The notes under the pieces: model-generated
Databases searched by the model: none
Told to the model about the DNA's origin: nothing
The model's input: only the letters and a program-made list of their open reading frames with translations
Made by a program: the position numbers and the translations under genes
Part shown: positions 1-31,994 of the stretch, in pieces
Numbering within the stretch: the stretch's first letter is position 1
Layout of the letters: every line of letters begins with the position of its first letter
NCBI RefSeq assembly: GCF_000400465.1
Contig: NW_008806291.1
Span: forward strand, 30,001-62,000
DNA from: Wallemia ichthyophaga EXF-994
Lineage: Eukaryota; Fungi; Basidiomycota
Length of the DNA: 32,000 nt
Direction: 5' to 3'

Positions 1-4
1 GCAG

Positions 5-3035: not shown

Positions 3036-3392
3036 AAATCGCCGGAAGTCCGTGTCTCATGAACAGGTGAACGACAAACTCCGAGCTAAGATTGGCCAAG
3101 AATCCACCAAGAATCATTGTGGATCCGTCTGTTGCCAAGCTTGTGCTGTTATCAAACCACCGTCATCTCAAATACACAAATTACGCTATCAAAGTCGCCG
3201 GAAAAATCGTTAGCCCGGAATTTTACAGAATCCGTAAATGATATGGCCGTTTATTGCCGTCTAATCGCGGGTATTACATATGGTCCGTATGAGAAATAAG
3301 TGGATACAGGACATTCAGGGAGTGTCCAACACGCCTTTAACGCCTTCACCAAGATTTATCTTGCGAGACAACTCTATCTGAAATCGCCGGAG
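3036..3392. promoter_or_regulatory. Three copies of AARTCGCCGGA in the divergent cupin/permease promoter; putative Zn2Cys6 factor sites
   Basis: aaatcgccgga 3036-3046, aagtcgccgga 3192-3202, aaatcgccgga 3381-3391, plus the related gcccggaa 3213-3220. CGG triplets are the known Zn2Cys6 half-site. Function is inferred. Confidence 0.55.
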
Positions 3393-3568
3393 AAATTCCC
3401 GCCGAACAAGCAAATCACAAAGAATAATGCAGCAGCTGAGCATATAGCTTTCTCGCTCTGTAGCAATTTACTACACAAATCTCGCTTTTTTACTGCCCAC
3501 GGGAAATGTCAGCGCGCTTAATTTAGCTCATGTGGATGTCTCATTAGGCACACGCATGAACATAGATC

Positions 3569-3576
3569 TATAAATA
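3569..3576 (+). promoter_or_regulatory. TATA box of the ACS-family permease gene
   Basis: TATAAATA about 75 nt upstream of ATG 3651, followed by a C/A-rich leader. Confidence 0.55.
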
Positions 3577-3650
3577 GATTACGATGGTTTCTGACTTAAT
3601 AAACTGCTCAACTCGCTAATTTCTCATAATCAACACAACCAACACAAAAC

Positions 3651-7876: not shown

Positions 7877-7966
7877 GGATTTATTGGTTCGTTGATTGTA
7901 GTTAATGAGTAATAAGTTATGCATATCATTCCACGTCTATTCAAGGGTTTTGTTATAGCTGAGTTG

Positions 7967-9785: not shown

Positions 9786-9886
9786 TAACGGGATAAATTT
9801 ATATTTTATATTTTAATTCGATGTTGGTCGTTGCTGCGAGAGAGTCTTCTCGGTTGATAACCAACGGCGAACGTGGAGAATAGAGA

Positions 9887-10876: not shown

Positions 10877-10882
10877 AAGATA

Positions 10883-10909
10883 CATTACGTCATTACCTCA
10901 TTACGTCAT
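10883..10909. repeat. 8-nt tandem repeat CATTACGT-CATTACCT-CATTACGT-CAT, containing two TTACGTCA/ATGACGT CRE-like sites
   Basis: Read directly in the 44-nt gap between two convergent stop codons. Confidence 0.85.
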
Positions 10910-10920
10910 ATACAAATTAC

Positions 10921-11257
10921 TCAACCCCCAACATTGTTTGAATTGGATTCAGTGGCTGGCTCAGTTTGAAGTGGATTGATTGACCCTGCGAATGATTCAA
11001 CTTGGGTTGTTTCGTTGTTACTACCATCATTCGCTAATCCAGCAACGCCAAATGATGAATCGGAGTGAGTGGAAGGCGTGGGGGTGTTCTTGATACTCCC
11101 ATCGTCAACGCCTTCAAAACCTGCCTGATTCGATCTGGAGAAAGAGTCGCCGTGTGTGTTTACACCGTAGCCCCCTTCATCTGTGGCTGTGAGGGTGTGT
11201 CAGTCATATGAACACCTACCATTTCAATCACTCACTATCATTACTATAATTACTCAT
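10921..11257 (-). CDS. Small acidic Gly/Ser/Asn-rich protein (95 aa), hydrophilin-like; intron 11187-11235; absent from the ORF track
   Basis: ATG 11257, 22-nt exon 1, canonical 49-nt intron GTGAGT..CTGAC..CAG, 266-nt exon 2 ending TGA 10921. Total 288 nt in frame: MSNYSNDTTDEGGYGVNTHG..SNNVGG. Confidence 0.75.
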
Positions 11258-11356
11258 ACTAAATAATCGATAAGATGAATATTTTCACTCTCTTGATAGT
11301 TGTAGTAAATTCTAAAATCAAATCCGAATTGAAACGGTCACCAAATAAAATAAAAA

Positions 11357-12592
11357 ATGGGGCGTAAATCAGCGACCAAGAAGAAGCAAGTGGAGGAAGA
11401 GGAGGAGTATGAGATTGATTCTATTATAGATGCCATGATTGGTGGTGTACGGGGGAGACCTGTAAGTGGTGTACTAGGAGTGATACGCGTGGATATCTTA
11501 TCGAATTCAAATTAGAAAACTCTCAGCTATTTTGTCAGTTGGAAGGTTTGTTATTTTACGCGCGTTTTTTCCCTCTCTCACACTTACCAGGGATACCCAG
11601 AATCTGATAATTGCTGGGTAACGGACGGTGACGCGAACAATGCAAGCGAATTGGTTAAGAAGTTCTGGTATCATAACCCAGACTTATACGTTGATCTCGG
11701 TTTGAAGCCTAACAAGGTGGAGAAGCCACAGTCTCTGATTAATCGCGAGAAAGGCAAGGATATCCAACAGGAGGAGGATTTGAATGACAATAACGAGGAT
11801 CAACAGCACAACCGTACTTTCCTCAATCCTCCTCATTCTCCTGATGAAAGTGACTTGGACAATGGCTTAGACCATGACGTAGACAATCATTCCAATGAGG
11901 ATCATCATCCTGCTATTCCCGCTGATGATGCTGACGATGCTGACGATGCTGACGATGCTGACGATGCTGCCGATGCTGCTCACAGTGATAAAGCTGCTAC
12001 GGTTGATCCTGAGCCTGAATCTGATACTCATTCTCACTCTAAACTCCACTCTCACTCTCAAACTCTCTCTCAGCCTCCCTCTCGCCCTAAAAGAGGCAGA
12101 GGTCGCCCTTCAAAAGCCTCTCTTGGACTAAATCCCACTGAAAAACAAACAAAGTCCAAAAAGTTCAAAATTTCCTCCTATGAGTGGGTTCCCTTGTCTT
12201 TTCTATCACTCCCACTTCTCACAAACTTTCACAGCGATGCTCCACGTTGGGATAACCACCTCGACATCTTGGGCGTCAGTCGCTCAGATGTTCCCGGTGA
12301 AAAAGCCATGTTCAAAGTCCAGTTCGATGATGCGCGTGTCAATGTCTATGGTTTTGAAGAGCTTGTTGAGAGAGCTCCAAAGACAGTGAGCTGGTTAATT
12401 GCAATCTCAAACCCCTCTAACAACCCTCTCAGCTCTGCAGATATCTCTCTATGTACATGGACGTAAGTCCCAAGAAACCATAATCTCACACACTCAAATC
12501 ATCAGTTCGACAAAGCTCAAACAGATAACAGTGAACCGTCTAGACCTCTGAAAAGACACAACCAAGACGGTAAAACGTTTTTTGAAGTTTGA
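11357..12592 (+). CDS. HP1/Swi6-like heterochromatin protein (about 331 aa): chromodomain, acidic hinge with AT-hook, chromo-shadow-like domain; introns 11462-11515, 11546-11590, 12184-12234, 12386-12432, 12463-12505
   Basis: Spliced chromodomain EEEEEYEIDSII..YFVSWKGYPESDNCWV..ELVKKFW with aromatic cage Y/W/Y. Hinge contains KRGRGRPSK. C-terminal WDNHLDILGVSR..APKTLCRYLSMYMDF aligns by eye to the chromo-shadow CPQxxxxFYExxLxF pattern. Spliced length 996 nt is in frame. Confidence 0.8.
11921..11980 (+). repeat. Coding 9-nt minisatellite (GCTGAYGAT)5, encoding (ADD)5-AADAA
   Basis: Read directly in the HP1-like hinge. Confidence 0.95.
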
Positions 12593-12729
12593 GTCGTGTC
12601 GGATTACTTGGTAATCTCTTTTCTTTTTTTTTCACTCGCCACTGTCAATCAAAACTCTACCCGCTAGTTGCTTTCTGTACAATTTAATCAATCTCTACCA
12701 TATAAATTTGTAGTTGTTCATTTTAATCT

Positions 12730-15269
12730 TTACAGCTCCTCATGTACGTGTTGTGTGCCTGCTGCGCTCTCCGGTATAGCTGTGCTGGTTGGGTAATCAG
12801 CCACGTCAAATATCGTGCCATGCGCCGTGTCATTGTCTTTATGTGTGTCAACCAGTGGTGAGTGTTGGATGAATTCTTTCTCGGTGCTCTGTTCAACATC
12901 TTGACTGTTGTCGTCGTTTTCGAAGGGTGTGTGTGGCTCTTGATGGTAATGATCGTATGGCTTTTCTTGTGCGTCCTCCTGCTCCTCTATGCGCTCCTCT
13001 TCTTCCTCTTCTTGCTCGCTCACGTACACCTTCCCCACGCTCGCCACGCGCGACTCAAACTGCTGCTCGAGAGCGACGACCTTGCCAAACACCTCTTCAA
13101 ACAATGGCTCTAACACCAAATCGGTTTCTTGGACATCGCTAAGATGATCGACACGCTCGTCAAAGGTTTGCGTGAGATGGTGATAGTGCATCCAATCGCG
13201 ATAAGTGACACCATCCGTCCAAGCGAGTGTGCTACCAACCTCCCTCTGTGCTCGAGTGAGAAATTCACGCGGCGCGCTAATCGCCTCCCCGATCATCTTC
13301 ACTTCCATCTCATCTATTTCTCCCTGCCAACGCACCATACCGTCCAAAACGTTTTGGGCGAGCTGGCGCAGTTTGTTGGTTACTTTCGTACGGACTGTTT
13401 CTATGTTTTGGGTGTGTGTGTGGTGCTTCTCATCTCCTTGGTCACTAATTTCACTCATTTCCCGCTCGTGGTAGTCGACAAAACCATCCATCAGTCGCTG
13501 GAAATCACTCGTGAGCGATTCGACAGCCTTTTCACTGCTTAGTGTGACTGACGACGCCAATTCTGCGCGCTGCGTCGAGAGACGGTGCATGAATTGGACC
13601 GCACTGGCATCGAGAAGACGAGATAGCTCTGTATGTGTGTCATTGAGTGTCGTAAGTGTTTCTTCCAGATGGGGCGTGGGTTGTGGTGCTTCTGGCACCG
13701 CTGTGCCCGTGCCGCTGTTTTCTTTGACTTGTTCTCCCTCTCCCTCTCCTTGCTTCTCCCCCTCATTCTCACCCTCACTTCCGCTCATGCTTGCGAGGAA
13801 ATAGCTTATCTCATCCGCTGTTTCGCCAGTCGCTCCGTATGTGCTGGCTGTCTGGGGTGTGTTAGTGGGCTGCGCAGTGTAATTTGGTGGGAGCGTGGGG
13901 TATGTGAGAGTATAACAAAGTGTGAGACAGTGTGAGACAGTGTAATAAGAGAATGCGGTAGAATTACACGTGTATGATTGTGTGTTTTGTAAATATACGC
14001 AGGTACGAGAAATGGGAAAGTGAAAAATAATGTCAAAAGAGATGAAAGAGTGAGTGTGCAAATGCTGGAATGGTCAAGTGCTAAAGTCGCAAGTGCCATA
14101 GTACTCACTGCATAATCCACAGTGCTGCATAATAAAGCCTTACTCCACTCACACCCCTTACATCCACCACGACCCCACTAAGGACTCACATTAGAGCGCT
14201 GGACCTCGATCCACTCGGCAAGTCGGCTAAGGACAGGATCAAGGAACTTGCCTTTGAGCGAATGGAAGTGTTTGACGGTAATGAGTTTATCGTCGAGACC
14301 AAATTTGACATACTGACCGAGAGCCAAGCGGGAGATGTGTGATGTTATTCTGTGACTAATAGCGAGCCACTCAGCCACTGCGCGCTTCAAGTACTTTGTG
14401 AGGAATGTGCGTATATGCGGATAGTACGTTTTAGTGTACGACCAAGTTGTTGAAAGTGCCCTGATAGCCTGACGCTGAGAGTATGCGTGCACGACACTTA
14501 AGTGGGGGTGCAGAGCAGTGTAGGTGTTTTGAATTTGCTTATGAGATTGGTTGAGAAGAGAAAAGACACGCTGAGTGTGCTTGTGGGTGGAGATTGGGAG
14601 GTAGTACTTGTCGTGATATACCTTCCAATAACGCATTGCAACACCCTGCCATTCATCATAAACAGGTTTAAACCTATTCGCTAGTCTTCTCGATTGAATT
14701 TCGAGTCGTGGGTGGATAGAAGCGTTGTAGAGGTGCGTGGCACTCTTCTTGGATCTGCTGAGATAAGGTTCGAGCTTAACTAGCTGAGTTGTAATCGGAT
14801 TAAGCTTATTTTGAGCTTGTTGAAGGTGAGGGAGGATGACTGGGTGAACGTGGTCGTAGTAGACGGGTTCAAAGTACTCGACGGTAGACTGATGACGCAC
14901 GCAGAGGTCACTTGAGTCGGGAGTAATTGGAGTGTGGCAGAATAAGTGGGCTAGAAAGGTGTAAAGGAGGAAAAAGAGAGTGAAGCGCTTGACGAGACTT
15001 GTAAGCCTGAAAGGGGATCTGCTTCTAGGTACGGGTTCCACAGGCTGTACACGATTAGACTTTGTATCTGTTTTGACTTGGTCGTGGATGTCCTGTGTGG
15101 TGTTAGCCGTGTTAACCGTGCTAGGCAGTTCAACCAGCTCAACCCAACTCACACTAAAGAGAATCTTATCTGGGAGATTCTCCTGCTTCTCCTGCTTTTC
15201 CTGCTTCTTCTCCTTCTTTTCAGACACTGGAACTGCTGGCGTTGGCTTGTTGAGATTATTTCTAGCCAT
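12730..15269 (-). CDS. She10/Osw7-like single-pass membrane protein with coiled-coil region and C-terminal HEEL (about 713 aa); introns 15093-15152 and 13852-14189 (second intron model uncertain)
   Basis: N-terminal TM FTLFFLLYTFLAHLF followed by Cys residues and helical repeats. The downstream exon carries LAWTDGVTYRDWMHYHHL, which resembles the W-x-DG-[VI]-TY-x-DW-x-x-YH motif I recall for this fungal family (to be verified). Joining phases are compatible. Confidence 0.6.
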
Positions 15270-15328
15270 GGATGCAATTGAACAAGAAGGAATTGATAAA
15301 ATTTTACTGAAAAATACATGAAAACCAT

Positions 15329-16051
15329 TCAAATCAGCCAGTTCTCAACGCTGTCGTCTTCCTTCCACTGCGTAATAAACGTATCTACGAACGGTTTAAC
15401 TAATTTACCGGTGGTTGAGATTCCATCCACTCTTGTGAATGATTCAATGTAGATCATCTTTGGGTGGGGAATTCCAACCAATTTAGCGACCCAGATTGCT
15501 GCAACCAGCGAAACACAGGTAGATGGCCCATTCATTATCAACATATCGCCCAAGTGAGGTGAAGGTGCATCTGTAATGCTGTTAGAGCGTGTTGATGAGG
15601 GATTTGATATATCTGGTGGTGGTAGAATACTCAAACTCAAGCATTGGATGAATGAGACAAACAAATTTCCAGGTAGCTTGGAGTAACCCTCTCCAACGCC
15701 TCTTAAGCGGTGTAGATACTTGATAGCGTAGTATCCACTATCAGTCCAATCCAATGTAGCCGCTGTTTGCTTGAAATTTTCAAGTTCAACGACTCTATTA
15801 GTGGTAAGGGTGTCTCCGGAGTGGATCAGCCACAACCTAGGCGTGTACACCTTGAACATTAAAGCATCAATCATCTTCAATAACTCGGCGGAATGACCTC
15901 CACTTCCCATCATGACCGATATAGACACCTTTTCTCCAGGCTTCTTGTTCACTTTAGCAGAAGCACCGGATCTGAACTGGTTGATAGTGATCAAGCACTT
16001 GCCTAGAAGGAATAGCACTGCTGCTGCTGCGATTGAAATGTATTTATTCAT
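15329..16051 (-). CDS. ALG14: UDP-N-acetylglucosamine transferase subunit Alg14 (240 aa)
   Basis: N-terminal TM, VMMGSGGHSAEL, MNGPSTCV, IYIESFTRV..STTGKLV..FITQW. Confidence 0.93.
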   Translation of the reverse strand: MNKYISIAAAAVLFLLGKCLITINQFRSGASAKVNKKPGEKVSISVMMGSGGHSAELLKMIDALMFKVYTPRLWLIHSGDTLTTNRVVELENFKQTAATLDWTDSGYYAIKYLHRLRGVGEGYSKLPGNLFVSFIQCLSLSILPPPDISNPSSTRSNSITDAPSPHLGDMLIMNGPSTCVSLVAAIWVAKLVGIPHPKMIYIESFTRVDGISTTGKLVKPFVDTFITQWKEDDSVENWLI

Positions 16052-16092
16052 CCGTGTGCGTCCTTGGTGGTCGTAGCACTCGAACTATCAAC

Positions 16093-16515
16093 ATGGTTTG
16101 TTATTATAGTGTGTTATATTACCATTTCTAATACCACTCAAAGCCAGCTACTCTCGAATCCATCCACCCCGGCGACGGTAAAAACTTCCCAAAGCCAGGC
16201 CAAACTATCACCATGCACTACCACGGTACTCTGCTCGATGGCTCTGTATTTGACAGCTCTTACAGAAGAGGACAGCCATTTTCATCCCCAATTGGAATTG
16301 GAAGGTTGATTGGCGGTGAGTGATAGTGCTGACGTGTATGCCGGCGTCTAATCCGTCCTACAGCTTGGGATCAATGTGTACCTCAAATGTCTATCGGCCA
16401 AAAGGCAATCATCACTGCCACCCCTGAAGTTGGCTACGGTGAAAGAGGTTTCCCCCCAGTGATTCCACCAAACGCAACTCTCAAATTCGAAGTTGAATTG
16501 CTTGCTATTCAATAG
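16093..16515 (+). CDS. FPR1: FKBP12 peptidyl-prolyl isomerase (108 aa); introns 16096-16143, 16316-16363; missed by the ORF track
   Basis: Spliced product [81 protein letters not shown]. Exon 1 is the ATG alone. Confidence 0.95.
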
Positions 16516-16701
16516 ACTCGTTTTATTGGTGTTGAAAGCGTCTTCTAGGTGTGTTTGTACGCGTCTTCTAGCTCTTTTTCAACGCGTTTTTCTTTTTACA
16601 ACTTTCATTGTACACATGTCAATTTTCATTTGAACGGTGTCTTAACATTCATAAGTACTGTTTGTGAGTATTTATCCTTCCTTTCCCTCTCAAATCCCCT
16701 C

Positions 16702-18336
16702 ATGAAGAAACACAATCCATTCCAGGTTCCGCTCTCGACGCAGCGATATGTAGAGGTTTACAACGTACTCAACCAGCACAACTGTACAAAGGTGTGATAG
16801 GTGCTGTGACCTGCTGTCTTCTCACAATCCACCTAGCTTCTCGACCTCGGTTCTGGCGCTGGCAGTCTACTCCTCGAGCAGCTCCTCAAGCCTCCGATAA
16901 GTCTCGATGACGATGCACTCCGCCTCGCCCACTACCACGCACTTGACAGCGACCTCGCCGAGCTAGACGCTCTCTCACGCCTACTAGCCTCGCACCGCGA
17001 CGCCACTCTACGCTGGTCCACCGACCTCACTCTCCGCCTTTACCACGCCGATTTCGCAGCTACGTTCCACCCCGCCTTCCGCGCACTAGACGCCATCGTT
17101 GCCGTGGAGGTGCTCGAGCATATGCAAGAGTCTGTACTGGCGCAGACGATGCAGCTCATCCTAGGCACATACAGCCCACCCCTTTTCATCGCTACAACCC
17201 CCAACTACGACTTCAACCCACGCTTCACCTCCCCTGCACGCGTCGTGGACCCTACCGGACGCACCGACAGGCTTTTCCGTCATCCTGATCATAAATTCGA
17301 GCTGGGCGTGCGGGAGTACACACAGTGGTGCGCGCATTACGCCCGTTTGTTCGGTTATAATGTCTCCGTGTATGGCGTCGGCGAGTCTATCGCGCAGAAC
17401 CTCAATCCACCCAGTACCGATCCACGCGTCGATGACCGCTATCCGAGTCAAATTGCCGTGTTCAAGCGGGTGCGGTGTGCGGGCAGGATTAATACTGAGA
17501 ATACTGCGAATACTGAGGAAAGTGACCTCACCCAACCCACGCAACTCCCGCCCCTCCATTCCTCCTACACGCTCCCGAGCGCCGCGGAGCATTTGTCGCG
17601 GAGCAGCAAACTCAACGCCGGAACACCCGGAACACCCGGCACACCCGGCACACCCAACACACACGCAATCCTCACCCACCTCTACTCCCTCCTCGATCTC
17701 CCGTTCGGCGGGAGCAGGGTGGTCGTAGCATCTGCGCTCAGTCTCTGGGACACGCACATGCAGCTCCTCTGCAGAGGCGTTTTCGCCACGCTCCTCGACG
17801 CCGTCAGAAACAGCGGCAAGTATGGCGGTGAGGTGTCGACACTGGATGTAGACGGGGTGCGCGAACATAGCAGCCAACTCAGCGAGCATAGCAATCACAG
17901 CAATCACAGCCAACACAGCCAACACAGCGGAGACGCCTGGTTTATCTTGGCGAAAAACAGCTCCGACACACCCTCCATCGTCTACCGCCAGAGCGTCACG
18001 GACGTGCTCCATGCAGACACACTCGCCGCTGAGATGCGCGATAAGCGCAAAACACCCAAGGATAAAGAGAGAGAGCGGCAGCAGGAGGAGAAACAAGTGG
18101 ATGAGAGATTGGAGTTTGAGAAGGAGCAGCTGGTGGAAAACAGTGAGTATGGCTCCTCCCCTACACACAGCAGCTCTTGTTTGTCAGATAGATACGGTGA
18201 CACTGACGCCGTCCTCGCTAACCTCCAGCTCAATCTTTGGAAAGCAGACCCTGTGTGGTCTCAAGATGCCGCCAATGCCGCCGATGGCTCCAATGCGGGA
18301 TGGGGCGATGCCGATGCAAATCCCACTTGGTCGTAG
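16702..18336 (+). CDS. HEN1: HEN1-like small-RNA 2'-O-methyltransferase (about 529 aa) with a long low-complexity C-terminal extension; intron 16792-16836
   Basis: FQVPLSTQRY, SAM motif I LLDLGSGAG, DAIVAVEVLEH, TTPNYDFN and FRHPDHKFEL are the HEN1 methyltransferase signature motifs. Confidence 0.9.
17491..17928 (+). repeat. Three separate coding 9-nt tandem repeats in HEN1: (AATACTGMG)3 17491-17517, (GGMACACCC)4 17620-17655, (AGCVAKCAY/AGCCAACAC)5 17881-17925
   Basis: Read directly; they encode NTE-NTA-NTE, (GTP)4 and SEH-SNH-SNH-SQH-SQH. Confidence 0.9.
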
Positions 18337-18410
18337 CCTATGTCTTATTATTTGCAATCTTCTTGGCGCATTTATTTATAAAGACAGTGTTTCTTACATG
18401 CCTCACCCAC

Positions 18411-21400
18411 TCACTCAAATCCCAATCCAGCCACCTCCTCTTTCACATTCGCGATAAAGCGCTGCACGCCCTCGCTATCGAGTACAGACTCAGTGGTGCG
18501 AGCAGCCACAAACACCGTGTCGGCATGCGCATCGAGCACTACGTCCAAAAAGAGGGCATGCTTGGAGCGTGTTAGATAGAAGCCACCTCTACATTTCCAC
18601 TCACTCTCGATACTCCCCGCGTGTCCATCTCGCGCACGCTACTGTCGACATCTAGCTTCTCACTCGCCGCGTAGTCGCTAGGCGGACCAATCTGCCCGAG
18701 TATTTTGTCAGCACCTCCTGTGTCGAAACATGCTCACTCACATCCACCTGCGACAGTGCCGACGCGTCACTCGAGAATATCCTCTCTGCATGCCATAGCA
18801 AGTTGATGTAGACGTTGAAGACGGGCTCGCTCGTGCCCAATACCCTCCTGGCGATCTCGCCGTTGTCGTCCTGCTCGACCAGCACGCGCTTTGAGATACT
18901 CTTCTGGACTGCTTGAGCTGCTTGGACATCACCACTGAACGGTCCTACACCCAGCGGGAGCAGGTTGAGACACGGGCCTGCGACTGTATCTATACCATCA
19001 ATGCTGGCTGCGCGGCCAGTGTGGTAGACCCCCACTATCGGTTTCGCAGTCTGCGTGATCCTGCCCACCACCTTTGCAACCATAGTAGTGAGCACCGATT
19101 GAAGAGATACTTGGTGACGTTGTTGGAGTCGTTGAGTGAGGCTCTGCGCACCCTGTACCACGTCCTCCTTGTAAAACACCTGCTTACTGGAAGAATTCTT
19201 CACTGGGAGGAGTGTTGGCTGGCTGCCCCCCAACTCCGCCCTCCAGAACTCCTCGTCGAATGTGTTCCTCGACGCCGCCTCAACCACCTTACCGAAATCA
19301 CCAATGGACGCCAGCTCGCCTCCGCTGTAGCTGCGCCACAAATCGCTCATGAGCAACGGGATTGTCCATGCGTCGTACAGCGCATGATGGATCTTGAGCA
19401 GCACATAAGAAGTCGAGCGCATCTGCACAACAATCAGCTTCACTGGCGGGCGGTGCAGGGAGGAAGGTGCCCTGAACTCTTCCCGCACAATGCGCTTTGC
19501 TGTTTCCAATGCCTCGCCATCGCTGTTAACCACCTGCAACTCTGCGTCGTATTCCGTCAACACCACCTGCAGTGGTCGGCCGTCTACCGCTGTGAAGCAG
19601 GTGCGGAGGATGGGGTGGTGTGACACGAGCCTCCTCCATGCGCCCTGCAATTTGCGGAGGTCGAGTTTGTGCGGCGCCGCATGCGTGAACACGGGCTCGT
19701 AGAAGGTGTGCCCGCTGAGAATCCACGCTTGCAGGTGGTACGCCTGTCCAGGCAGCAGAGGCAGCACAGCCTCTGCTTCACGCCTGCTCAGACGTAGGCG
19801 TGCAAGCGCGCTGACAGCTTCAGATGCTGACACCAGAGGCCTGTCTTTGTCCCCCTTCTCGTCTTCTCTCCCGTAAGCTGTGCGCTCCCTCAACACCCTG
19901 TCCACGCCCGCTATCGTTTCCCCAACGAATATATCCGATACTGCCAAATCTTTCACCCCCAGCTTGCGACAGCGTGCGGCTAGCTGGATTGCACCGACTG
20001 AGTCCAGTCCTAATGCGTACAACGGCGCACTATAGCTAATCTCCTCGACATTGAGCTTCGAGATAATCGCAAACACATCACGGATCGTCGCCATCGTGCT
20101 TGTCACATGGCCGTCGTAGGCTTCTGTGTGTTGGACATATTCAACTGTTGCATCGATAGTGTTGTTCAGTGGAAGCGCGGCGAGCGATGATGGCTTTGCA
20201 GTAGCTGGCTGATGAGGATGATCGACTATATCAGCAAATAGTTCCCCGAATTTGCCAATTAATTCGTCCAGCTCCTTCCCTGTCATCACACTGCTCAGGC
20301 AGCTTGCGTTGATGGCGAGAGTGTCGCCTGCGTCGACAAACTCAGCATTTAGGGGGTATTCAACACTCTGCTCGGACTGTTCAGTCAGATCAACCGTCTC
20401 CCACAGCTTCACTTTCGGCTCTTGGTCATCCCGGAAGGACTTTTGGAATACAAAGAGCGTTTCGAAAAGCGACTTCTGCTTTACTACCCTCTGAACATCT
20501 CTAAGTGGGACGTGTTGGTGCGCTTCAATCTCGTTATACTGTTCAAATGCTTCGTGGCAGACATCGATGTTTGTCGCCTTCTTATTACCGATTTTGAACC
20601 TATAAGGAACAGTGCTGTCCGTATTGTTAAGTCTTGCTCATTAAATACACAAAGCACTCACTTGAACAATGGTCCAGACGCTAACAACGCATCTTCTAGT
20701 CCGATCGAGCGGCCAGCTACCACCTGCCCAAATGCAACATCGAGCGATCCAAATAATCCGCAAAGAGTCTTACCCCATGCCACTAGTACCATTGACTGAA
20801 GCGACACGCCAGCTGATTTTACGAGTCTGTTCGCCTTGGCTGTGATAGGAATGGTCTTGCCGGTAAAGTGTGCCTTGACCTCTCCCTGCTGAATTTTAGG
20901 AAGTGGCTTTGGAACGTAATTGGACATCTTGCTCTTCCAAAACCCTTCGTCATCCCTTGCACCGTCGAGAATATACGGTATTGCTTGGGTGAATTGTGGA
21001 CGCAGAGGCACTCTGTTGGCACTATAGCGTGCAAGTATCTCGTCTAGCACTAATGGCAGAGATACACCATCGTACAAGCTGCCGAAGGCCTAGTTAGAGG
21101 TACGTTACGATTATGTTGCGGTACACTTACGCGTGATGCATGGTCAAGACCAAAAATTTCTCCTTGTTTGTTTTGATAATCGTGAAGGCGTATGGCGGCT
21201 TTTCGAAATCGTCTTCCTGGCTTGGAACACTTGCACTACCGAGAATCTTCGAAGCTTCTTCAACTGATCCAACGGTGTGCTCATTCCATACCACATCGAC
21301 TCTGCCATGGATGAGTATCACCCAAGGATATTTGTCTTCGTCCGTAGTGCGGAATGATGCTCTAAGAATATCAACGTTCGCAACCGTGTCTATAACAGCC

Positions 21401-24400
21401 TTTTTGAGTGCTGCTACATCCATCGCATCGCTTAGCTTCAAGGTATGCTGAACGTTGTAAAATTTACCACCAGATGAAATAGTCTGTGTGAGCATACCAG
21501 TCTGCAGCGGCGTGGCAGGCACGACCTTCTCGATACCACACCCACCGTACCTTTCACCTAAACTCTGTGCAATCTTGGCAAATTCCCCAGCGATGTCCTT
21601 ATTGCTGGTGTTTGGCGCATACTTTGCAAGCTCACCAATACATCCAGCACGCATAATCGCATGTGTGGGAATGTTGATACCTTGCTTGCGCAACGACTGT
21701 GCAAATCTAACAGACGAGATGGAGTCTATGCCCAGAGAAATGAATGTAGACTCTTTGCTGATTGAGGTTTCATCCATATTGCACAGGTTCGCAATAGATT
21801 GACGCATAACTGACTCTTCAGCAGTCCATTCAACATTATAGCTAGTCTCTTGAGGATTTGCTAATTGCTGTGGTTTTAGCGGCTCGACTACCTGTTGGGC
21901 ATCTTCGAGAAGATTGTTGATCCGGCTGATGAGGATCTCGGCATCGCGCGATTGACCGAATGAAGAGTTGAAAACTGCGCGTAGGGTGAGCTTATTACTC
22001 TCTACATTAGCCGTGGCTTCGAGTGCGAGTGGGTACTTTAGTGTGTTAGAATAAGTTCACCAATGGTGATCACACCTACATCAACGCGAGACGACTCTTC
22101 GAGCTGCTCCCAGAGACTCTCATTCCCTTCGCCAGCAAGTCTACCGAAGGCGAACAGTGAATCGAAAAGACCGGCTGGTCGATTTATCCATTTTTGTATC
22201 AGGCGCAATGGCGTATATTGATACTCGAGTACCTGAGCACTCTCGCTCTGTGCTTGTTGCGCCATGTCTACAAACTTGCTTGCATCTGCCACCTTCACAC
22301 GCACTGGCATAGTTGTAATGCATGGCGCAAGCATAGTCTCAACACCACTGACAGGTACTGTGCGACCCGATAGGACGACACCAGTTGTCTATTTACGAGT
22401 TAGATGGACTATTGGCGCAAGATTTTCTGCTCACAATATCTGTCACTCCAGAAGATTCACCGAGCGAAACACCGTATGCTGTTTGAACGAGCACACGCAA
22501 TGACACATTCAATGAGCGTCCCAACATTTCCAGCTTCGATAAGGGCAGAGAAGCAGTCTTAACAACCTCTTTCGCGGTTGTACTACCCATTTCCATCTCG
22601 TTAGCTTGTGGCAGGTCTGACAAGTACTCCACGAAAAAAGTTCTAGCAACTTCTAGCGACTGACTGGAGATGAAATCGAGCAAGCGATCGACTGGTGCTC
22701 TTACGAGCGAAAATGATTCCTGGTAGCGTTCCTTTATTTCATCCATCAACATCAGGAATGATTCACCATCATATACAGCGTGGTGCATCGTGAATTGAGC
22801 AAAGGCTCTACCCGTAGCTGGCTTAGTTATGAGGACTCGAAGAGGCACCCTTGATTGAATGTTATCGACAACATCCTTCTCCAAATCCTTCTTTTTTGAG
22901 TCAAGGTAAGCTATGGCTGATGCTTCTGATTCACTTTGGTGTGTTTGTATAGCGTCAGTCTTCTCCAAAACAACTTGAGCCACTGCAGCTTCACCGAAAA
23001 AAAAGCAGGTGCGCAAAATTTCATTGGCTGCTATGGTCTTATCAATCGCTTCGGTAAATTGATCGATGACCACCCCACTATCCAGCTTAAACGTAAAATG
23101 GTTGACGTAGACGGGTTCAGCAGAGTTGAGAGTACGTGCGACCAAACCTTCTTGAAGCGGAAGACACGGTCTGACAGCTTCTAAGGTATCTCCAAAAGCG
23201 GCTCTTATCGACTTTTCGAAGCCTTCGTCAAGTTTCCGCACAGCTGAACTGTCTTTATTGCCGTCAGAGGAAGTGCTGTCGGCGAGCTTGGCAAGCTTCT
23301 CCACAGATGGACCAGATAAGACGACATGTGGTGGCACTGCAAGGCCTTTTGACTTCAAAAGAAAGCTGAGTGAGATGGCTGATAGTGAGTCAACACCCAA
23401 TTCCAGTGTGGTAGTTGATGAACTGATCGTATCCATGCCAACACCAGTCTGCTCACTGAGTGCAATAGCGATGATCTTCTCTTCAGCTGTAAGCGCACGC
23501 CGATTGTCTGTTGCCATTTCTGCACTTTTTTTCACCATGTTGCGAAGCGGCACTTGAGTGAATAATCTTCTAAGAATTTTCTCGTTCGTATGTCCATTGC
23601 TGGCGTCACATATTGGTAAGAAGGTCATTGGAAGAATAATGTCAGGTCTAGCCCCATATCCGAGCTTCTCTGCGCACGATTGGGTGAGAGATCTCGCAAA
23701 TGATTCATCTTGTGCGTCAATATCAGTAGTTGATCCATCGAGTGGATCATAGTTGTACGCGCGAGCAACAAATGCGACAATGTCTGGTTGCATGCTTTCT
23801 GGATGTTGCAGGACCATCGCTTGAGAAACAATGTTTTGTCGAGAAACAGATTCGACATTGCGCGAGACTTTTTCAAGATTAATTTGGATGTCTCTGTAGT
23901 TGACAATATCGCCCACTTTACGCTCCAACAAGACGCTATCGCTGCTGATCATTCTAGCTACCAATCCTGAACGTATGTACTCCCCTTCATCGCTAAAGGC
24001 GCAAAGCTCTCCTGCTTCAGCGAGAATGGCGACTTCTCTGGAGCAAAACCTTGCAATGCATGTCTTAATAAGTGGCTGGTCATAGACATTTGGCTGTTCA
24101 CTATTGTAATGTGACAAGAATGCAACAGATGAGGCGTGTGGAATTGCCAACGTTTTCCAAACATAGGCATCCATCCATGACTCATGGAGCGCTTTTGATG
24201 ATATGTGACCAGTTAAAATGATGTGTTTGAGTTGAGGTAACTCCGATCTTACGATACAATCCTTCTCAAACCATGCAGCCGTGAGGAAGGCATGAGTAAT
24301 CTGTGCCGCTTGAAGTGAAGCTCTGGCATTGTTTCTCAGATCTTCCACGCGTTTGCACACTATTTTAGAGCCCATTATAAGCGGTACTAATGTCTCCAAA

Positions 24401-27400
24401 ATGTGAAGATCAAATGCTGAGAATTTGTCAGCCGGTAGTCTATCAGGCTGAGAGTCACTCACTGCCAGGAAGCCAATTCAAAAATGTTGAAGCATTTGAA
24501 TCTGTCTTCAACCGATCTGAGGCCAAAGAAGCGTGATTGAAAAGTTGCTCGGTTGACCAGACAGAGTAGTCGTGCATGTCGAGCTGACCATTTGCAATAG
24601 TGATAGCAGCACGTTCAGTAAGACGCGTCTCTGTTGTATCACTGGAAATTTTGGCAAGATTTTCTACGTAACTCTTCTCGTCAACAAAAACAACCTTTTC
24701 GTTATCGAGTAAGGCGAAATCTTCCGCGTACTTCCTGATAGTGTAAACGATGTCTGCCTTGAACGAGCGTGCTATAAGTCTCTTGCGATTTGCAGGCAAG
24801 TTCTCACCAACGGCTATGTATGTTTTGCTAGCTTTGAAGATACCAAGCCTATGAACGATTGATTCATGTGAAGGTGGAATGCACAAGGCAACAACTTCAA
24901 CCGCGGATGTTAGCGAATTGGAAACTCTGTTGGATTGACTATCAAGCTCCTTAAAGGAGAGTGTACCAGTATCCGAAGTGACAGCTACCTCTTCCGGACG
25001 TTGTTGGACGTTGCGAGACAAAGTAACGAGAGGATTAATTGTAGCATCGGCGACCTTACTATGTGCTTTGGCGATGAGAGCCTCGTCGATCTTTCCAACA
25101 AGACTTGAGACTGGCTCATCGGCATGTTCACTCATTGCGTTCACCAATGCTTGCATTTGCTTTGAAAGAAGCTCAACTTGCTCCTCTGACCTGATTGACT
25201 TGTTAGCGGTCAAACGGAATATAACAGATAACCCACATAAGTAAATTACTTCCAAGAATGTCAATTTGAACGCTATCACCTCTGATAAAAGCGTTGATGG
25301 CGACAGGGTGCTCAACATCAAGCTCTCCTATCTCAAAGTTATCTTTGAACAAATCACCTTTGGTTTCCTCTCCTGACTCAACGATGAGAACAAACAGTGC
25401 GGGGAAGAGAGGAGCGCCAGAAGCACATTTGAGAGCTTGACGCACGTGCTGAAGACCAACGAACTTGTGTGGAGAACTAGCGGAGGCTAACGTGGACAAA
25501 TTATCCATCAACTGTCTAGCTGATGCGTTTTTGTCAACTTTGAGTGCAACTGGAAGAGTAGCAATCATTGGAGCCACAACGCTTTCCAAACCTGGAGCTA
25601 GACCGCGCAAGCTGAGAGTCTCGCCGAAAATAACATCCTCGGTTGATGTGTACCTTGACTGGAGAACAGCCCAGGCTGCTTGAAGCAGCTGGTTGATGTT
25701 TGCACGCTTGACGTCACTAAATCCCTTCGTCCAGAATCTTTGAGAGCGTTGAGAGTTGTCGTTGTGCAAAACAGGCCACTCTGTATTGCTTGTCTCAGCA
25801 AATGGCTCCAAAACCTTGTTCCAGAACTGCTTGGTAGTGTTTACGTCTGTGTTTATAACTGACATCGCGTCCTTCAGTGATGTGCGAGTGGCTTTATACT
25901 TTCGCATGTATGCATTTTCAACATCCTGGTAAATGAATTTGAGCGCGTCTCCATCGTAGATTGCGTGGTGAAGTGACGTCATGAGATAGCGACTGCCATC
26001 TGCCTTGGTTGCAAGCGTGAGAGCAACAGGCGGCTGATGTGAGCCTGACAAGGAGCTGACAATGTTACGGACACGCTCTTCAAGGATTTTCTCGCTGTCA
26101 AACCTGACTCTATCGAGAGCGAGCTTCGATGTAGAGTGTATGCATTGGGCGAAGACGGTGTCTTTCACACCATATGTGGCAGCTGGAATAAACGAGGTTC
26201 TCAAAGCCTGCGTGCTTTCTGCCACAGTCTTCCAGGCTCCGTAAAGAGCATCCACATCCACTTTGCTGGACAATTTGAAGACTTGATGCGACCAGTACGC
26301 AGCAGGGTTCTTGATGGTCTCACCAAGCATACCTTCCTGTGTCGGGGTGCATGGAAGAACGAAATCTACATCGGCAATGTCTTTTCTAACACTACCAATC
26401 AAGCTTTCGTTAAAGGTTTGCATCCACTTTGGTGTCTCAGTGACCATCTGATTCGATTCTGCTTTTGTAATGGCTTTGCTGAGTTGCTTTATGGTAGGAA
26501 ATGCTGCTATCTGGCTCACTGCGGCGTTGACACCTGCATTACGGAGCTTGGAAGCGAGCTGCAGGGAGCGAATCTAGGGAAGTGGTCAAAATGATTCGCT
26601 TCATCATTATTCACTCACGGAATCAACACCGAGCGCTGGTAAGTGCGAGGACTTGGAGATGCTGTCCACGGCGACGTTTGTCAGTCTAGCAGTAACTTGA
26701 CGAATAATCTGCTCCATTTCACTCCAAAATCCATCATCACCATCATCAAGACCGCTTAGGCGGCTTTCCCAGTCTGCAATTTCAACTTGCTCGTAATATC
26801 TTGCCAGCATCTTCCTGTCGATCTTGTTCGAAGGGGTGTGAGGGAGGTGTGTTAGAACCAGTATTACATTGGGAATCATGTAAGCTGGAAGGCTAGACTC
26901 TGCACGCTCCTTGCAAGCGGCAGCCACTGTCAACGCGTCGCTATCCGTGCGCAGTCCATCCTCTTTCTCGCCCTTGAGTGCGGGGGCGGCAACGAATGTA
27001 CACACGACCTTTTGCGGTCTATCGTGTCTTGACAATTGGAATGTTGTAGTCTCGCGAGCTAGCTCGTGGCAGTTGCCCAAGGCAGCACTGATTTCAGAAA
27101 GCTCAACTCTAATACCACCAAGCTTGACGAGATCGTCATTACGACCAACGAATTCACAGCTACCATCGTGCAACAAACGCACAACATCGCCAGTGAGATA
27201 CACTCGGCCAGCTTGTGGATGGTTGACAAACTTCTTGTTCGTCTGATCGGTATTGCGATGATATCCACGGGCATTTTGGAAGCCGCCCAAAGCTAACTCA
27301 CCAACAGCACCCCTCAGCAGAATTCTATCGTCCTGTATAACAAAACATGAGACGGTCGAGAGTGGAAGACCAACGTTGTGAGCTTTGGTGACTTCATTTG

Positions 27401-30400
27401 GAGTGAAACGGCGGTATGTTGCAATGATAGTTGATTCTGCAGGCCCGTACGTGTTGAGCGACACAGTGTCTTCCCTGCACCACGCATTTGCGACAGGCTG
27501 GGGGAGTTTTTCACCGATGCTAATGAGCGACTCAAGCGAGCTGCAGTTCTGGAGCGACGACTGAGCCATGAAGGCCGGTGTGAGAAAGGCGTGGGTGGCT
27601 GCAAACCCTCTGACGAGCTCTTCAAATGATCCGACGAGGTTGTCGCGAGTAGATGAACAGAGTGTGCCGCAAGTCTTGCCAAGTGCGTAGAAGACGTCAA
27701 GTACGGAAACATCAAAGGTATATGCGGAGAAGTTGAGACAGCGGATATGTGTGTCTTTCTTCCATGGTATTTCCTCTTGCAAGACTGTCAAGCTTTGCAC
27801 AGCGGCAAAGTGCTCAATTGGAACACCCTTTGGTGCGCCAGTGGTACCTGATGTCCATATCAAGTACGCTAAATGATTAGGTTTGGTGCATATGGCGGGT
27901 TTGCTAGACGGCTGCTTGCTATAAATGACATCTGCAAAAGAGCTGACCGTGATCTTGTCTTGAACGATCTTGCTGACTAGAGCCTTGTTCTCTTCATCCC
28001 GAACGAGAACAACAGGACCGCCAGCACGCTCAAACAGATCCTTCTTTCTGAGCGCTGGAGCAGCAGTGTCAATAGGGCACCATGCACCACCAGCCTGTAC
28101 GAGCATTAGCAACATGGTCATAAACACACGCAACACACCTTCACGATACCGAGAATAGCCATGAACATCTCGGGAGTTTTTTCTATATGGATGGGGATGG
28201 GCGTGTCAGTGAGATCGCCGTAAGTTGAGGTAAGGTAGTTCGCGACTCTGTTAGCACGAGCGTCCAGCTCGGCATACGTCCATCTGATATCTTTGGAAGC
28301 GTCCAATGGGTCTGGTTTGAACCACAAAGCGAGCGATTGAGGGTAGTCTTTTGCATTTCTCTCAAATTGGTGGTGGATAAGTTCCGCTTCAACGCCTTCG
28401 ATACGGATAGGGTATGGGTTGACAGCGGACGCGAGAGAGTGGCTTACATCCACGGCGATATCTTTAAACTTTCTATCGAGATCGCCTTCAAGGATGCTCG
28501 ATAGAATGTCATCGAATTGCCTCAGCATCATAGCAGACGACTCCTCGACCAAGACGTTATTGGAGCATGTAGCTCTCAACCTAATAGTATCGTTTGGATC
28601 AGGCCAAATTTCCAAAACGACAGCGAACTCTGTAACCATAGGAGGATATTCCGAGTGCGTCCAGAGCTCTGTCTGGGATGCGCCTTGAGCGAATTGCTGC
28701 AATGCAATGGTAGTGTCGTAGATGATACCGTTGTCACCACTAAGAATCTTTGGTGGCAAGTGTCGGTGTACCAAGCCCTCAGCATTGCTTCTAACTAAAG
28801 ACTTGAGCACGCCGCCTACACTGTCATCATTCGGATTAGTCACACGAATAGGCGAAGCTGTAAACACAGGGCCGACGGTATGCTCGAGTTGGTCCGTCGT
28901 TCTGCCACCGACGATGCTACCGAATACAATGTCGTCGGCGTCAGACTCCGAGTACGCCAACAAGATGCTTGACCAGGCAGCCTGCACGATCGAGAGTGGT
29001 GATAGCTTAAGCTCGCGTGCCTTCTGGAGAAATGAGCTATGAGAGAGTTTGGACGTGACATTCGAGACGTGATGGCCTGTTTTCTTTGCGTCCTGCCTCA
29101 ATCCTGTAAGATCTGGGAACGGGTCTGAGGTAAAGTTGCTTAGCTTTCCACCCCAGTATTCAGCATTAGCCTGTGCGTCAGCGGTGAAGACATCCACAAG
29201 CGCATGAACAAATCCCTCTCTGGGTACTTCTGCATACGGATCACGGTAGAGTGTAGCAAGCTCGTCGAGCATCAAAGCAAGCGAAGCACCGTCTGTTGAT
29301 TTGTGAGTGGTTGACATTACCAAGATAGCTATCGACACCTACCAAACAGTGCGTGATGAAGACTGACAACGAGTTTCTTCGATTTGGAGTCGGAGTAGAT
29401 CGCGCCGCTTTGCGTTCTCTCCAATAGTGAGAACTTGACTGAAGCAGTATCAATGTGTTGCTGGACTAGTTGATCGACATCACCTCCTTCGACCTCGTCG
29501 AATGTTGTTATAGGGTCAACAGGTACAACCACCTGTGCGAATGCGCTGATGTGGCTGTTGTCGATGAGCACAAAGCGGGTGCGTAGAATTTCATGTCGTC
29601 TCACGAGCTCGCACCAGGCATTGCGAAGCCTCTCACTATCCACACCCTCTTTCAGGGTGTAAACGGAGTGGTTGATGTACCCTGTGCCCGTCTTGGAGTA
29701 CAATGCAAGTAAGCCCGTCTGCATTGTTGTCGCAGGTCTGATAGCTTCAGGCTGTGCCCCAAGCGCCTCTTCGACAATTGGGAGTGCTTGGCTGCGAAAC
29801 TCCTCCTCTATATCTTCATATACGGCCTGTCTGTTGTCATTTTCGCCGAAGCCCTCCTCCGTTCTCTGGAATGCAATGTTTGCTAGCGCAGCAGGAGACA
29901 GACCTTTAATGACATCTTCGATTGTAATGGCGAGTAGACCCTCTTCACGAGCCAAACTAAGAAAACGAACACCCCTCAGCGAGTCAATACCCAAGGCTAG
30001 GAGTGTGAGGTTCGCATCTATTTCCTTCTCCTCTAACCCCACTGTCTTTGAAATGCAACTGAGGACTTTGTCGAGTGTTGGGGTATCGAGAATATGAACA
30101 GCCTCTACAGGCTGCTCTTCAGCAGTGCTAGTAGCACCTACGACATAGCCCTCGCTTATGTGATCCTTCACATATTTAGCGATCGCCTTTCTATCAGCCT
30201 TCCCGGCTGTAGAGCGAGGTATATCATCGGCAAACAAGTAAGCTTGTGGACGCATGTGCGCTGGAAGATGTTTTTCTGCACTCTCCGCACATCTCCCTAC
30301 CAGCGATGTGGAGTGTGGTGTCACATAAGCGCACAGCTGGCCTTCTGGTTGGATGACGACAGTGTGGACAGAGCGAAGACCGGGAGTGTTGGAAAGAATA

Positions 30401-31994
30401 GAGTCAATTTCACCCAGCTCAACACGCCTTCCGTTCAGCTTGACTTGCTCCAATCCCATACGACCAAGGTACTCAACGTTGTTCCACTGATTCTTCTCGT
30501 CTAGCACAACGCGAGCCTTGTCGCCTGTTCTATACAGCCTGCCGAGACCTTGAACATTAATAAAAGCCTTTTCTGTCTGTTCGGCCATTTTTAAGTATCC
30601 TTTCGCCAGCTGAGGTCCGCCAATAGCGAGCTCGCCCGAGAATCCCATTGGCATGACCTTGTTGAGGGTTGGGTGAAGAATGAGCAGAGAAGCTGTATCA
30701 ATTGGAGGACCTAGCTTTGCACCTGACTGTTCGGATGGATGTTTACGGAGGGTTACGTTGATCGCTGCTTCGGTCGGTCCGTATGCGTTGTACAGCGAGT
30801 TGCCGGGGCGGGTGAAGTTGCTAATCACCCTATCTGACAGCTTCTCACCCATGGTCCACAGCTCAAACCCGTCCGGCAGTTTGTCTGGGTTGAAAAGGCC
30901 AGCAATTGAAGGTGTGGCCATCATGTGTGTGCAACGGAGCTTTGACACGACTAACTCGGGGTTGGTGAGAAATTCTGCGCGCGGAGAAGCACATATAGTG
31001 CTTCCAGAGCTGAGAGACATGAAAGTCTCCATGATGGACTGCATTGTGTCAGAGTTGCGGGTGTGTTGATATCAATAGTGAGACTTACAGGATCGAACGT
31101 CGACGGAGCGAATTGGAACCATCTTACCTTATTGTCGAGTGGCCTGACGGCTAAGTGAGATTGTATCGATGCTGCTGCTGCTGAATGCTGTATTTGGACA
31201 CCTTTAGGTTTGCCTGTTGAGCCAGAAGTGAAGAGAACGTATGCAACGTCGTCTGGGGTCGCTTGTTGGGGTGCGTCGACAGCCAAACACTCTCTACTCA
31301 AGTACTCGACCATAAAAGCAGAGACATCGATGTATTGGGTGTCTCGCTTAATCCAAGCATCACGCTCACCCAAGCCGAGTACGACGGATGCATCCAAATC
31401 ATCTAGTAATCCAAGCTGCCTTTCTACAGGCGCTTGTAGATCGAATGGGCTGAATGCATTGGCTGATTTCAGTGCAGCCAAGTACCCAATGTATAGTTCC
31501 AGCGAAGGTGGGAGAAGGAGAGGAACAACAGCACGGGTGCAAGGTATTTGCACAGCCAAAGCACTTGATAAGCTGTCTAGCTGAGCGTAGGTGAGTGTAG
31601 ATCCGTTGAAATCCACAGCGACGCAATCTGCGTGCATCTTGGATTGAGTGATGAAATCTGAGTGAAGTAATTTATCAATCGGAGGTTTGCTTGGTGGGTG
31701 ATTGAGTTTTGAAAGCGGGAGATCATCGTCGTTGTTGATAAAGAAGCGTTTGAGGGTGTGAGCGAGTTCTTGGCTGATACGATGCTTCATGGTAACATGG
31801 CCGTTGTTGATTGTGATGCGGAATAGATAGTCATCGCAGCTCGACTCGTAATCCTCATGCAGCTGGAAATCTTGGTGGGTGAATGGGGACACCTCGACGC
31901 TGCCATCGGCGCAAGAGATTGTACTGCCGTTGTGCTCGTAAGTAAATTCATCATCGCACAGGAATTCTTTCAGTAATGTTTGAAATCTTTCCAT
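18411..31994 (-). CDS. sidC: Ferrichrome-type siderophore NRPS (SidC-like), architecture A-T-C-A-T-C-dA-T-C-T-C-T-C; 4339 aa if ATG 31994 is the start; introns 31039-31088, 29293-29342, 28095-28138, 26574-26618, 25191-25236, 24417-24462, 22389-22434, 22036-22079, 21079-21130, 20615-20661, 18692-18741, 18561-18604
   Basis: A1 has FTSGSTGKPKG/YGPTE/YRTGD/GKADR. A2 has WTSGTTGAPKG/YGPAE/YLTGD/NKIDR. Five G-[IVL]-D-S T motifs (Ser codons 29980-82, 26619-21, 23386-88, 21721-23, 19999-20001) and five HHxxxD C motifs. Terminal T-C-T-C repeats are typical of ferrichrome synthetases. Twelve canonical introns give 13020 nt in one frame. The 5' end is only 6 nt from the window edge. Confidence 0.92.
23560..25040 (-). 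other. Degenerate adenylation domain (dA3) within the NRPS
   Basis: Full-length A-domain scaffold is still recognisable (LSFKELDSQSNRVS, TFDLHILE, THAFLT). The P-loop is replaced by RAAITIANGQLDMHDY, YGPTE is replaced by LAIPHA, TGD is replaced by YIRSGL, and the A10 catalytic Lys is His (NGHTNEK, 23590-23592). Confidence 0.9.

Follow-up and report, generated by a model that had tools for sequence, protein, structure and literature searches.

Ferrichrome synthetases are a model for the non-linear programming of fungal nonribosomal peptide synthetases (NRPSs). In SidC, the ferricrocin synthetase of A. nidulans, three modules, each with an adenylation (A), a carrier (T) and a condensation (C) domain, precede a T-C-T-C tail. 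Its third A domain is active, prefers L-N5-acyl-N5-hydroxyornithine (L-AHO; AHO without regard to configuration) and loads T3, T4 and T5. The 2023 SidC study puts forward schemes for six architectures, does not mention the synthetase Fso1 of Omphalotus olearius, and explains all architectures except one in which the sole hydroxamate-loading A domain is dead. The third A domain of Fso1 was left out of the analyses of Bushley et al. (2008) as "highly divergent ... and likely degenerate", several core motifs being missing. Here we analyze the NRPS gene NPS2, located in a 32,000-nucleotide stretch of DNA (the window) of Wallemia ichthyophaga EXF-994, a halophilic basidiomycete of the class Wallemiomycetes. 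Its genome is compact and poor in secondary-metabolite clusters, with one NRPS cluster and three further NRPS-like proteins, and the NPS2 product (XP_009269655) is the sole "siderophore peptide synthase" listed for it (Jancic et al. 2016). NPS2 is a further case of the known architecture with a dead third A domain and extends it to a second basidiomycete class.

Dead A domains are also retained in module 2 of Sib1 of S. pombe and in module 2 of SidD/NPS6. However, the orphan T domains of Sib1 and SidD are served by a live A domain of the same specificity in the same polypeptide, whereas the Wallemia enzyme has no such domain, its degenerate third A domain (dA3) being the only hydroxamate-type one. 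In addition, the dead domain of SidD has lost about 290 N-terminal residues, while dA3 is full length. A preliminary description of this DNA had attributed degenerate A domains to SidD and to basidiomycete type VI enzymes alike. This is true of SidD, but type VI enzymes consist of a single A-T-C module and a T-C repeat and are not degenerate-A enzymes (Bushley et al. 2008). Its statement that the last A domain of SidC- and Fso1-type synthetases activates AHO likewise holds for SidC and fails for Fso1. Since the dead third A domain of Fso1, the closest relative of dA3, has been on record since 2008, both the architecture and the dead domain were already known, and the implied novelty has to be given up. 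What has been described is the architecture and not the mechanism: in the literature searched we found no account of how Fso1-type enzymes obtain their hydroxamates.

The NPS2 synthetase and its third adenylation domain

The gene model was rebuilt from open frames and GT...AG introns and then compared with the annotated protein. NPS2 lies on the minus strand, with the ATG at 31994, the stop codon at 18411-18413, 12 introns and a product of 4339 amino acids (aa). The spliced product is residue-for-residue identical to EOQ99429.1 / XP_009269655.1 ("Nonribosomal peptide synthetase 2"), and the gene shows 0 mismatches to scaffold KE007241.1. Three Pfam AMP-binding domains, five T domains and five HHxxxD motifs follow one another in the order A1-T1-C1-A2-T2-C2-dA3-T3-C3-T4-C4-T5-C5. 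Both the identity of NPS2 and the death of its third A domain are, in our judgement, practically certain. The gene and its A domains are as follows:

18411..31994, minus strand: complete NPS2 gene; translation identical to the annotated protein, DNA identical to KE007241.1
30025..31652 (approximate borders), minus strand: A1, intact adenylation domain, code DPMMWMAINK; Pfam AMP-binding 176 bits, all motifs present
26676..28297 (approximate borders), minus strand: A2, intact adenylation domain, code DVLFIITIIK; Pfam AMP-binding 182 bits
24463..25189, minus strand: dA3 exon 1, with the region of core motifs A1 and A2 and the destroyed P-loop
24417..24462, minus strand: 46-nt intron in dA3 (GTGAGT...CTGAC...CAG); same break position in the related loci L001 and L002 (see below)
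23569..24416, minus strand: dA3 exon 2, with core motif A4 retained and remnants of A5, A7 and A10

A regular-expression scan of the protein found SG[ST]TGxPKG, YGP[TA]E, TGD and [GN]KxDR twice each, in A1 and A2 only. What stands at these sites in module 3 is seen from its alignment with A1, A2, Fso1, one bacterial A domain and GrsA. The P-loop site (24607-24563) reads AITIANGQLDMHDYS instead of [ST]SG[ST]TGxPKG and is likewise degenerate in Fso1 and in the related loci L001, L002 and L003. The A5 remnant is LAIPHASSVA (24150-24121) where NxYGPTE is expected, and the A7 remnant is YIRSGLVAR (23979-23953) at the place of Y[RK]TGD with its ribose-binding Asp. Motif A8 is largely rewritten, with ERKVGDIVNYRDIQINLEKVS where GRxDxQVKxxGxRIELGEI is expected. 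In the A10 remnant, SNGHTNEK (23601-23578) instead of NGKxDR, Lys 517 has become His; the same position is occupied by Arg in L001, L002 and Fso1 and by Gln in L003. Asp 235 is present in the window, L001 and Fso1, while L002 and L003 have Gly or Glu. The pocket, DLLFITIFLH, is filled with bulky residues, in contrast to the Gly-rich AHO pocket. Moreover, about 24 residues are deleted in Wallemia-type dA3 between A6 and A7 (GELxxGG to YRTGD; 23979-24050), a segment that Fso1 A3 keeps and that is present in active A domains.

Nevertheless, dA3 is not a fragment. Profile positions 39-529 match chain residues 7-542 of the third A domain of SidN from Epichloe (PDB 3ITE) with E = 1e-50, motif A4 is retained as FDLHILE (24414-24394), and the Pfam AMP-binding score of 64 bits, far below those of A1 and A2, still exceeds the cut-off of 29.9. 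The preliminary description had placed the domain at 23560-25040; this was the right domain, but its true span is 25189-23569 on the minus strand, in frame. The accompanying claims, that module 3 is full length, in frame and interrupted by a canonical intron, that it has lost the P-loop, YGPTE, TGD and the A10 Lys (now His), and that the carrier serines and C-domain motifs are intact through to the T-C-T-C tail, were borne out by the profile match, the motif scan and the alignment. From its sequence, dA3 is a full-length pseudo-enzyme without any of the residue sets for ATP binding and adenylate formation.

The same scan returned five LGxDS and five HHxxxD motifs, that is, an intact serine in every T domain and an intact motif in every C domain, all on the minus strand:

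29977..29994, minus strand: T1 phosphopantetheine site LGIDSL, aa 651
29291..29358, minus strand: C1 motif HHALFD, aa 863, split by intron 2
26571..26633, minus strand: T2 phosphopantetheine site LGVDSI, aa 1740, split by intron 4
25953..25970, minus strand: C2 motif HHAIYD, aa 1946
23383..23400, minus strand: T3 phosphopantetheine site LGVDSL, aa 2772
22768..22785, minus strand: C3 active-site motif HHAVYD, aa 2977
21718..21735, minus strand: T4 phosphopantetheine site LGIDSI, aa 3297
21069..21138, minus strand: C4 active-site motif HHALYD, aa 3496, split by intron 9
19996..20013, minus strand: T5 phosphopantetheine site LGLDSV, aa 3838
19372..19389, minus strand: motif HHALYD of C5, the terminal condensation domain, aa 4046

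A Type II synthetase is defined by three A-T-C modules with a T-C-T-C tail behind them. Type VI enzymes, on the other hand, have a single hydroxamate-specific A domain, whereas NPS2 has three A domains, none of them both active and hydroxamate-type. The architecture and the A-domain clades described below agree with the earlier view of a ferrichrome-type synthetase. NPS2 is an Fso1-type member of the ferrichrome synthetase family, of the NPS1/SidC lineage and Type II, and its putative product is a ferrichrome-type cyclic hexapeptide.

Ancestry and conservation of the dead domain

A database search with dA3 exon 1 gave a ranking dominated by bacterial multi-A NRPSs, and Fso1 was picked from it by coverage and position, as the one fungal protein whose third A domain (residues 2333-2586) was matched along the entire exon. 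Fso1 (Q52US9 / AAX49356, 4547 aa) is the closest full-length relative of W. ichthyophaga NPS2. It has the same domain order and is colinear throughout, with identities of 50% in A1, 64% in A2, 28.5% in the third A domain and 38% in the tail. The pocket codes of A1 and A2 are identical in the two proteins, and Fso1's third A domain likewise has no P-loop, YGPTE, TGD or A10 Lys. The genes differ in that NPS2 has far fewer introns than fso1.

Comparison with intact enzymes indicates what dA3 once was. SidN A3 is the top solved relative of the single dA3 sequence (69 bits vs 36 for the runner-up) and is matched over its whole length by a profile of the dA3 clade (175.8 bits; next match 130 bits). 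SidN A3 is intact, with TSGSTGTPKG, YGPTE, YRTGD and the A10 Lys, all four of which dA3 lacks. The FD[LV]HIxE form of A4 is nonetheless common to dA3, SidN A3 (FDVHIxE type) and type VI basidiomycete A domains. When compared with the intact SidC-type gene of Fusarium falciforme (L006), which like SidC shares the Wallemia architecture, dA3 matched the third A domain over its whole length (103 bits), the second with 34 bits and the first not at all. In an ascomycete ferricrocin synthetase (L007), the last A domain was the sole match. In a neighbor-joining tree of A domains (426 columns, 200 bootstraps), four Wallemia-type dA3 and Fso1 A3 formed a clade with 100% support, although long-branch attraction may contribute to this grouping; both have [ND]G[QH]L at the P-loop site. 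This clade joined the intact third A domain of L006 with 96% and then the NPS2-type terminal A domain with 85%, while the lineage clades of A1, A2 and the terminal A domain received 100%, 100% and 96%. Therefore, given the matches to SidN A3 and, in intact enzymes, to the third or last A domain, the tree grouping and the A4 form, dA3 is the orthologue of the L-AHO-activating terminal A domain. The tree analysis suggested in the preliminary description thus supports the relationship it had envisaged.

A further basidiomycete enzyme of Type II and the NPS1/SidC lineage is Fer3, the ferrichrome A synthetase of Ustilago maydis, whose A1 code is nearly identical to that of Wallemia. Its A3, compared through the table of Bushley et al. 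(2008) only, keeps Asp 235 and Lys 517 and is predicted to bind AHO, whereas dA3 lacks Lys 517.

Three other loci, two from Logan assemblies (L001 and L002) and one from an ENA metagenome scaffold (L003), contain this gene too, its frame open and its dA3 degenerate in the same motifs. Judged by identity and synteny, they presumably come from other Wallemia species. A scan of metagenomes with the dA3 alignment found no relative. Ratios of nonsynonymous to synonymous substitution rates (dN/dS) were taken against L001 only, for which dS is about 0.8 and unsaturated; dS against L002 is saturated. The two exons of dA3 gave 0.20 and 0.17, compared with 0.12-0.16 in C domains and 0.06-0.18 in T3-T5. 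Against L002, the evolutionary rate of dA3 is about four times that of A2 (dN 0.28-0.33 vs 0.076) and similar to that of the tail C domains. Both dA3 and the T-C-T-C tail are held by purifying selection. The dead-A3 state is no quirk of one mushroom sequence but is kept under selection in a distant basidiomycete class. We considered that the gene might be a pseudogene, or that an assembly or frame artefact might be involved, and rejected both, since the gene equals the reference and the dead-A3 state is kept in four related loci.

Charging of the hydroxamate carriers

With dA3 dead, the specificities of A1 and A2 become important. The 17 pocket positions of Bushley et al. were taken from an alignment to GrsA, whose sequence served as a ruler only; the ruler returned the rows published there for 1AMU, NPS2 A1 (DVFELIMIHK) and NPS2 A4 (DVLDIGGIGK). 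The Wallemia A1 code, DPMMWMAINK, is that of A. nidulans SidC A1 (Bushley et al., Table 2), which is serine-specific by assay (2023 SidC study). The A2 code, DVLFIITIIK, is identical in the window (26676-28297), L003 (12867-14400) and Fso1 (aa 1315-1845). A2 falls within the SidC A2 (Gly) clade, yet its pocket differs from DVQHTITVVK at five positions (239, 278, 299, 330 and 331), all changed toward bulkier hydrophobic residues (L239, F278, I299, I330 and I331); Fer3 A2, unlike that of Wallemia and Fso1, is also of the DVQHTITVVK type. Predicted AHO pockets have Gly at 301 in all cases and at 331 in most (Bushley et al. 2008, Table 2), and A2 has Ile at both. A2 thus has a crowded hydrophobic pocket of a Gly/Ala-like kind. 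In agreement with the preliminary description, neither A1 (Ser-type) nor A2 (small-residue-type) looks hydroxamate-type, and no domain in cis looks able to load a hydroxamate, although Bushley et al. warn that fungal pocket codes predict specificity poorly.

An extra A module encoded upstream, which the preliminary description had named as a refutation of its view, was likewise rejected: none is present in the 10 kb upstream of the ATG at 31994. More broadly, no second A module, SidA/ornithine monooxygenase or acyltransferase was found within 10 kb upstream or 18 kb downstream of NPS2. Because dA3 is a dead orthologue, the pockets of A1 and A2 appear to be of the wrong type and there is no additional module in the 10 kb upstream, the earlier proposal that the enzyme lacks a domain in cis for its own chelating residues stands.

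How, then, might T3-T5 be charged? The best overall explanation, to which we give an even chance, combines a scaffold role of dA3 with hydroxamate loading in trans. dA3 would serve structurally, linking C2 and T3 as a platform and, in analogy to A3 of SidC (SidA3), providing the surface at which C4 and C5 present T4 and T5. Three acyl-hydroxyornithines would be put on T3-T5 by an A domain of another polypeptide, with the three NRPS-like proteins as candidates in Wallemia or, in mushrooms, an A-T-C-T-C-T-C enzyme of type VI. The T-C tail would then build the tri-hydroxamate, and the Ser/Gly part would be joined and the product cyclized as in SidC. In the 2023 SidC study, C3A3T3 loaded AHO onto a separate C5T5 construct only with the C domain present, and models of SidC set C4 and C5 against A3; both observations lend support to trans-loading and to a scaffold. 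By this analogy and by the dN/dS values, the scaffold role seems probable, while trans-loading of T3-T5 taken by itself falls slightly short of an even chance. More tentatively still, Fso1-type synthetases from Wallemiomycetes to Agaricales may represent one half of a two-protein siderophore line, with dA3 as the docking platform. If this two-protein model is true, Fso1-type synthetases would be the first fungal siderophore NRPSs obligately loaded in trans, and the persistence of both Fso1-type and type VI enzymes in basidiomycetes would be explained. With a small genome, one NRPS cluster and three NRPS-like genes, the hunt for the hydroxamate loader, or for proof that no hydroxamate is put on, is tractable.

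Several points weigh against the combination of scaffold and trans-loading. The trans partner, an ornithine N5-monooxygenase in W. ichthyophaga and its production of any hydroxamate are all putative. The documented siderophore NRPSs with a dead A domain, SidD and Sib1, are all compensated within the same polypeptide. AlphaFold, given dA3 exon 2 and a 3-row alignment, returned a predicted local distance difference test (pLDDT) score of 31.6, and the case for a scaffold consists of analogy and dN/dS only. Finally, the A2 pocket changed in the exact lineage in which A3 died and then froze, which could mean a solution in cis.

This last point leads to a quite improbable alternative, in which A2 (or A1) has been repurposed or is promiscuous and activates acyl-hydroxyornithine in addition to its small amino acid, in the manner of SidD and Sib1. 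Every known precedent works in cis, and the five A2 pocket changes are lineage-specific, frozen and coincident with the loss of A3. Against this, the pocket has become more crowded and hydrophobic (L239, F278, I299, I301, I330 and I331), where the predicted AHO pockets of Bushley Table 2 have Gly at 301 and mostly at 331; A1 still has the code of the Ser-specific SidC A1. The pocket argument has its limit in the poor predictive value of fungal codes. Somewhat less improbable, though still unlikely, is a product without hydroxamates, for which A1 or A2 would charge T3-T5 inter-modularly, as is known of SidC, to give a Ser/Gly(Ala)-only peptide or another non-chelating product with a different role. 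This would fit the presence of only Ser-type and small-residue-type pockets, the non-canonical loading by SidC A2, which can build poly-Gly chains, the lack of a SidA or acyltransferase gene within 28 kb around NPS2, and the lack of any reported Wallemia siderophore in the literature searched. However, the homologue Fso1 is named a ferrichrome A synthetase and its fungus has ferrichrome A biosynthesis genes, the tail architecture is that of ferrichrome synthetases and is conserved, and an MFS-ArgJ pair (ornithine supply) directly upstream is conserved in two species. ArgJ, an ornithine acetyltransferase, makes ornithine, a weak hint of an ornithine-based product, and the MFS protein could be a siderophore transporter. 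As to the missing SidA gene, SidA adjoins the synthetase in the ascomycete locus L007, but such clustering is not universal.

The remaining explanations concern dA3 itself. It might be a non-canonical enzyme that binds the hydroxamate or a pre-activated donor and transfers it without the usual ANL residues, as its purifying selection, the Asp 235 kept in the window, L001 and Fso1, and a C-terminal subdomain that is the best conserved part relative to SidN A3 might suggest. Yet the P-loop, the A5 Thr/Glu, the A7 Asp and the A10 Lys are all lost, position 517 is variable (H, R, R, Q, R), Asp 235 gives way to Gly or Glu in L002 and L003, and bulky residues occupy the pocket positions; we regard this possibility as highly improbable. 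That the gene or dA3 is a decaying relic without function is scarcely credible. The about fourfold faster evolution of dA3 than of A2 would agree with decay, but the frame of 4339 codons is open with 12 canonical introns, the gene is intact in at least four related loci, dN/dS is well below 1 in every domain, and a compact genome poor in secondary-metabolite clusters, with a single NRPS cluster, has kept the gene. The comparison of orthologues and the dN/dS estimate for dA3 proposed in the preliminary description therefore speak for maintenance of the degenerate state, with the same motifs in L001-L003 and 0.17-0.20 against L001.

Gene neighborhood and intron structure

A further locus (L008) adds 10 kb upstream of the NPS2 ATG to the window. 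These 10 kb encode Ku, a gene of unassigned family, AA9, an MFS transporter (609 aa), ArgJ and two hydrophobins. The order AA9-MFS_1 (609 aa)-ArgJ-NRPS is common to W. ichthyophaga (L008 3789-8385) and L003 (1517-6336). The two hydrophobin genes lie directly upstream of the NRPS gene (L008 8625-9742); none is called there in L003. The pair fits the reported hydrophobin expansion of W. ichthyophaga.

Downstream of NPS2 the window holds a convergent gene, Alg14, RNase P p30, Dph2, two MFS transporters, a cupin and DNA polymerase alpha. The convergent gene (17104-18336, plus strand) ends about 75 nt from the NRPS stop codon; it is annotated with 529 aa, has no Pfam match and contains low-complexity runs (GTPGTPGTP and HSNHSNHSQHSQ), and its L003 counterpart gives weak methyltransferase matches. 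The two MFS_1 genes, at 3961-5383 and 6296-7876 (both plus strand), are 11-14 kb downstream of the NRPS gene.

The gene fso1 reportedly adjoins an ornithine monooxygenase and an acyltransferase gene, neither of which accompanies NPS2 in the 10 kb upstream and 18 kb downstream. On L007, an ascomycete metagenome contig, an NPS2-type ferricrocin synthetase (9517-23860) adjoins a SidA-like Lys/Orn oxygenase (6472-7986). This is the classical clustering of synthetase and SidA, which the Wallemia locus lacks. In L006, the annotation breaks the SidC-type NRPS into two fragments and leaves the intervening 6 kb (14474-20474) unannotated; the intact third A domain of this NRPS falls in the gap.

The introns of NPS2 are all short (44-52 nt) and canonical:

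31088-31039, 29342-29293, 28138-28095 and 26618-26574, minus strand: introns 1-4
25236-25191, 24462-24417, 22434-22389 and 22079-22036, minus strand: introns 5-8
21130-21079, 20661-20615, 18741-18692 and 18604-18561, minus strand: introns 9-12

Intron positions vary among orthologues. L001 reads through several of the window introns (25236-25191, 22434-22389 and 22079-22036) in its region 2-5357, and in L003 the intron within dA3 lies elsewhere than in the window, after aa 2592 (L003 17030-17080). Base composition also varies along the window, with a GC fraction of about 0.56 over the T5-C5 end and the convergent neighbor (17000-20000), about 0.45-0.47 over dA3, T3 and C3 (22000-26000), and a second GC-rich block at 7000-10000 (Dph2).

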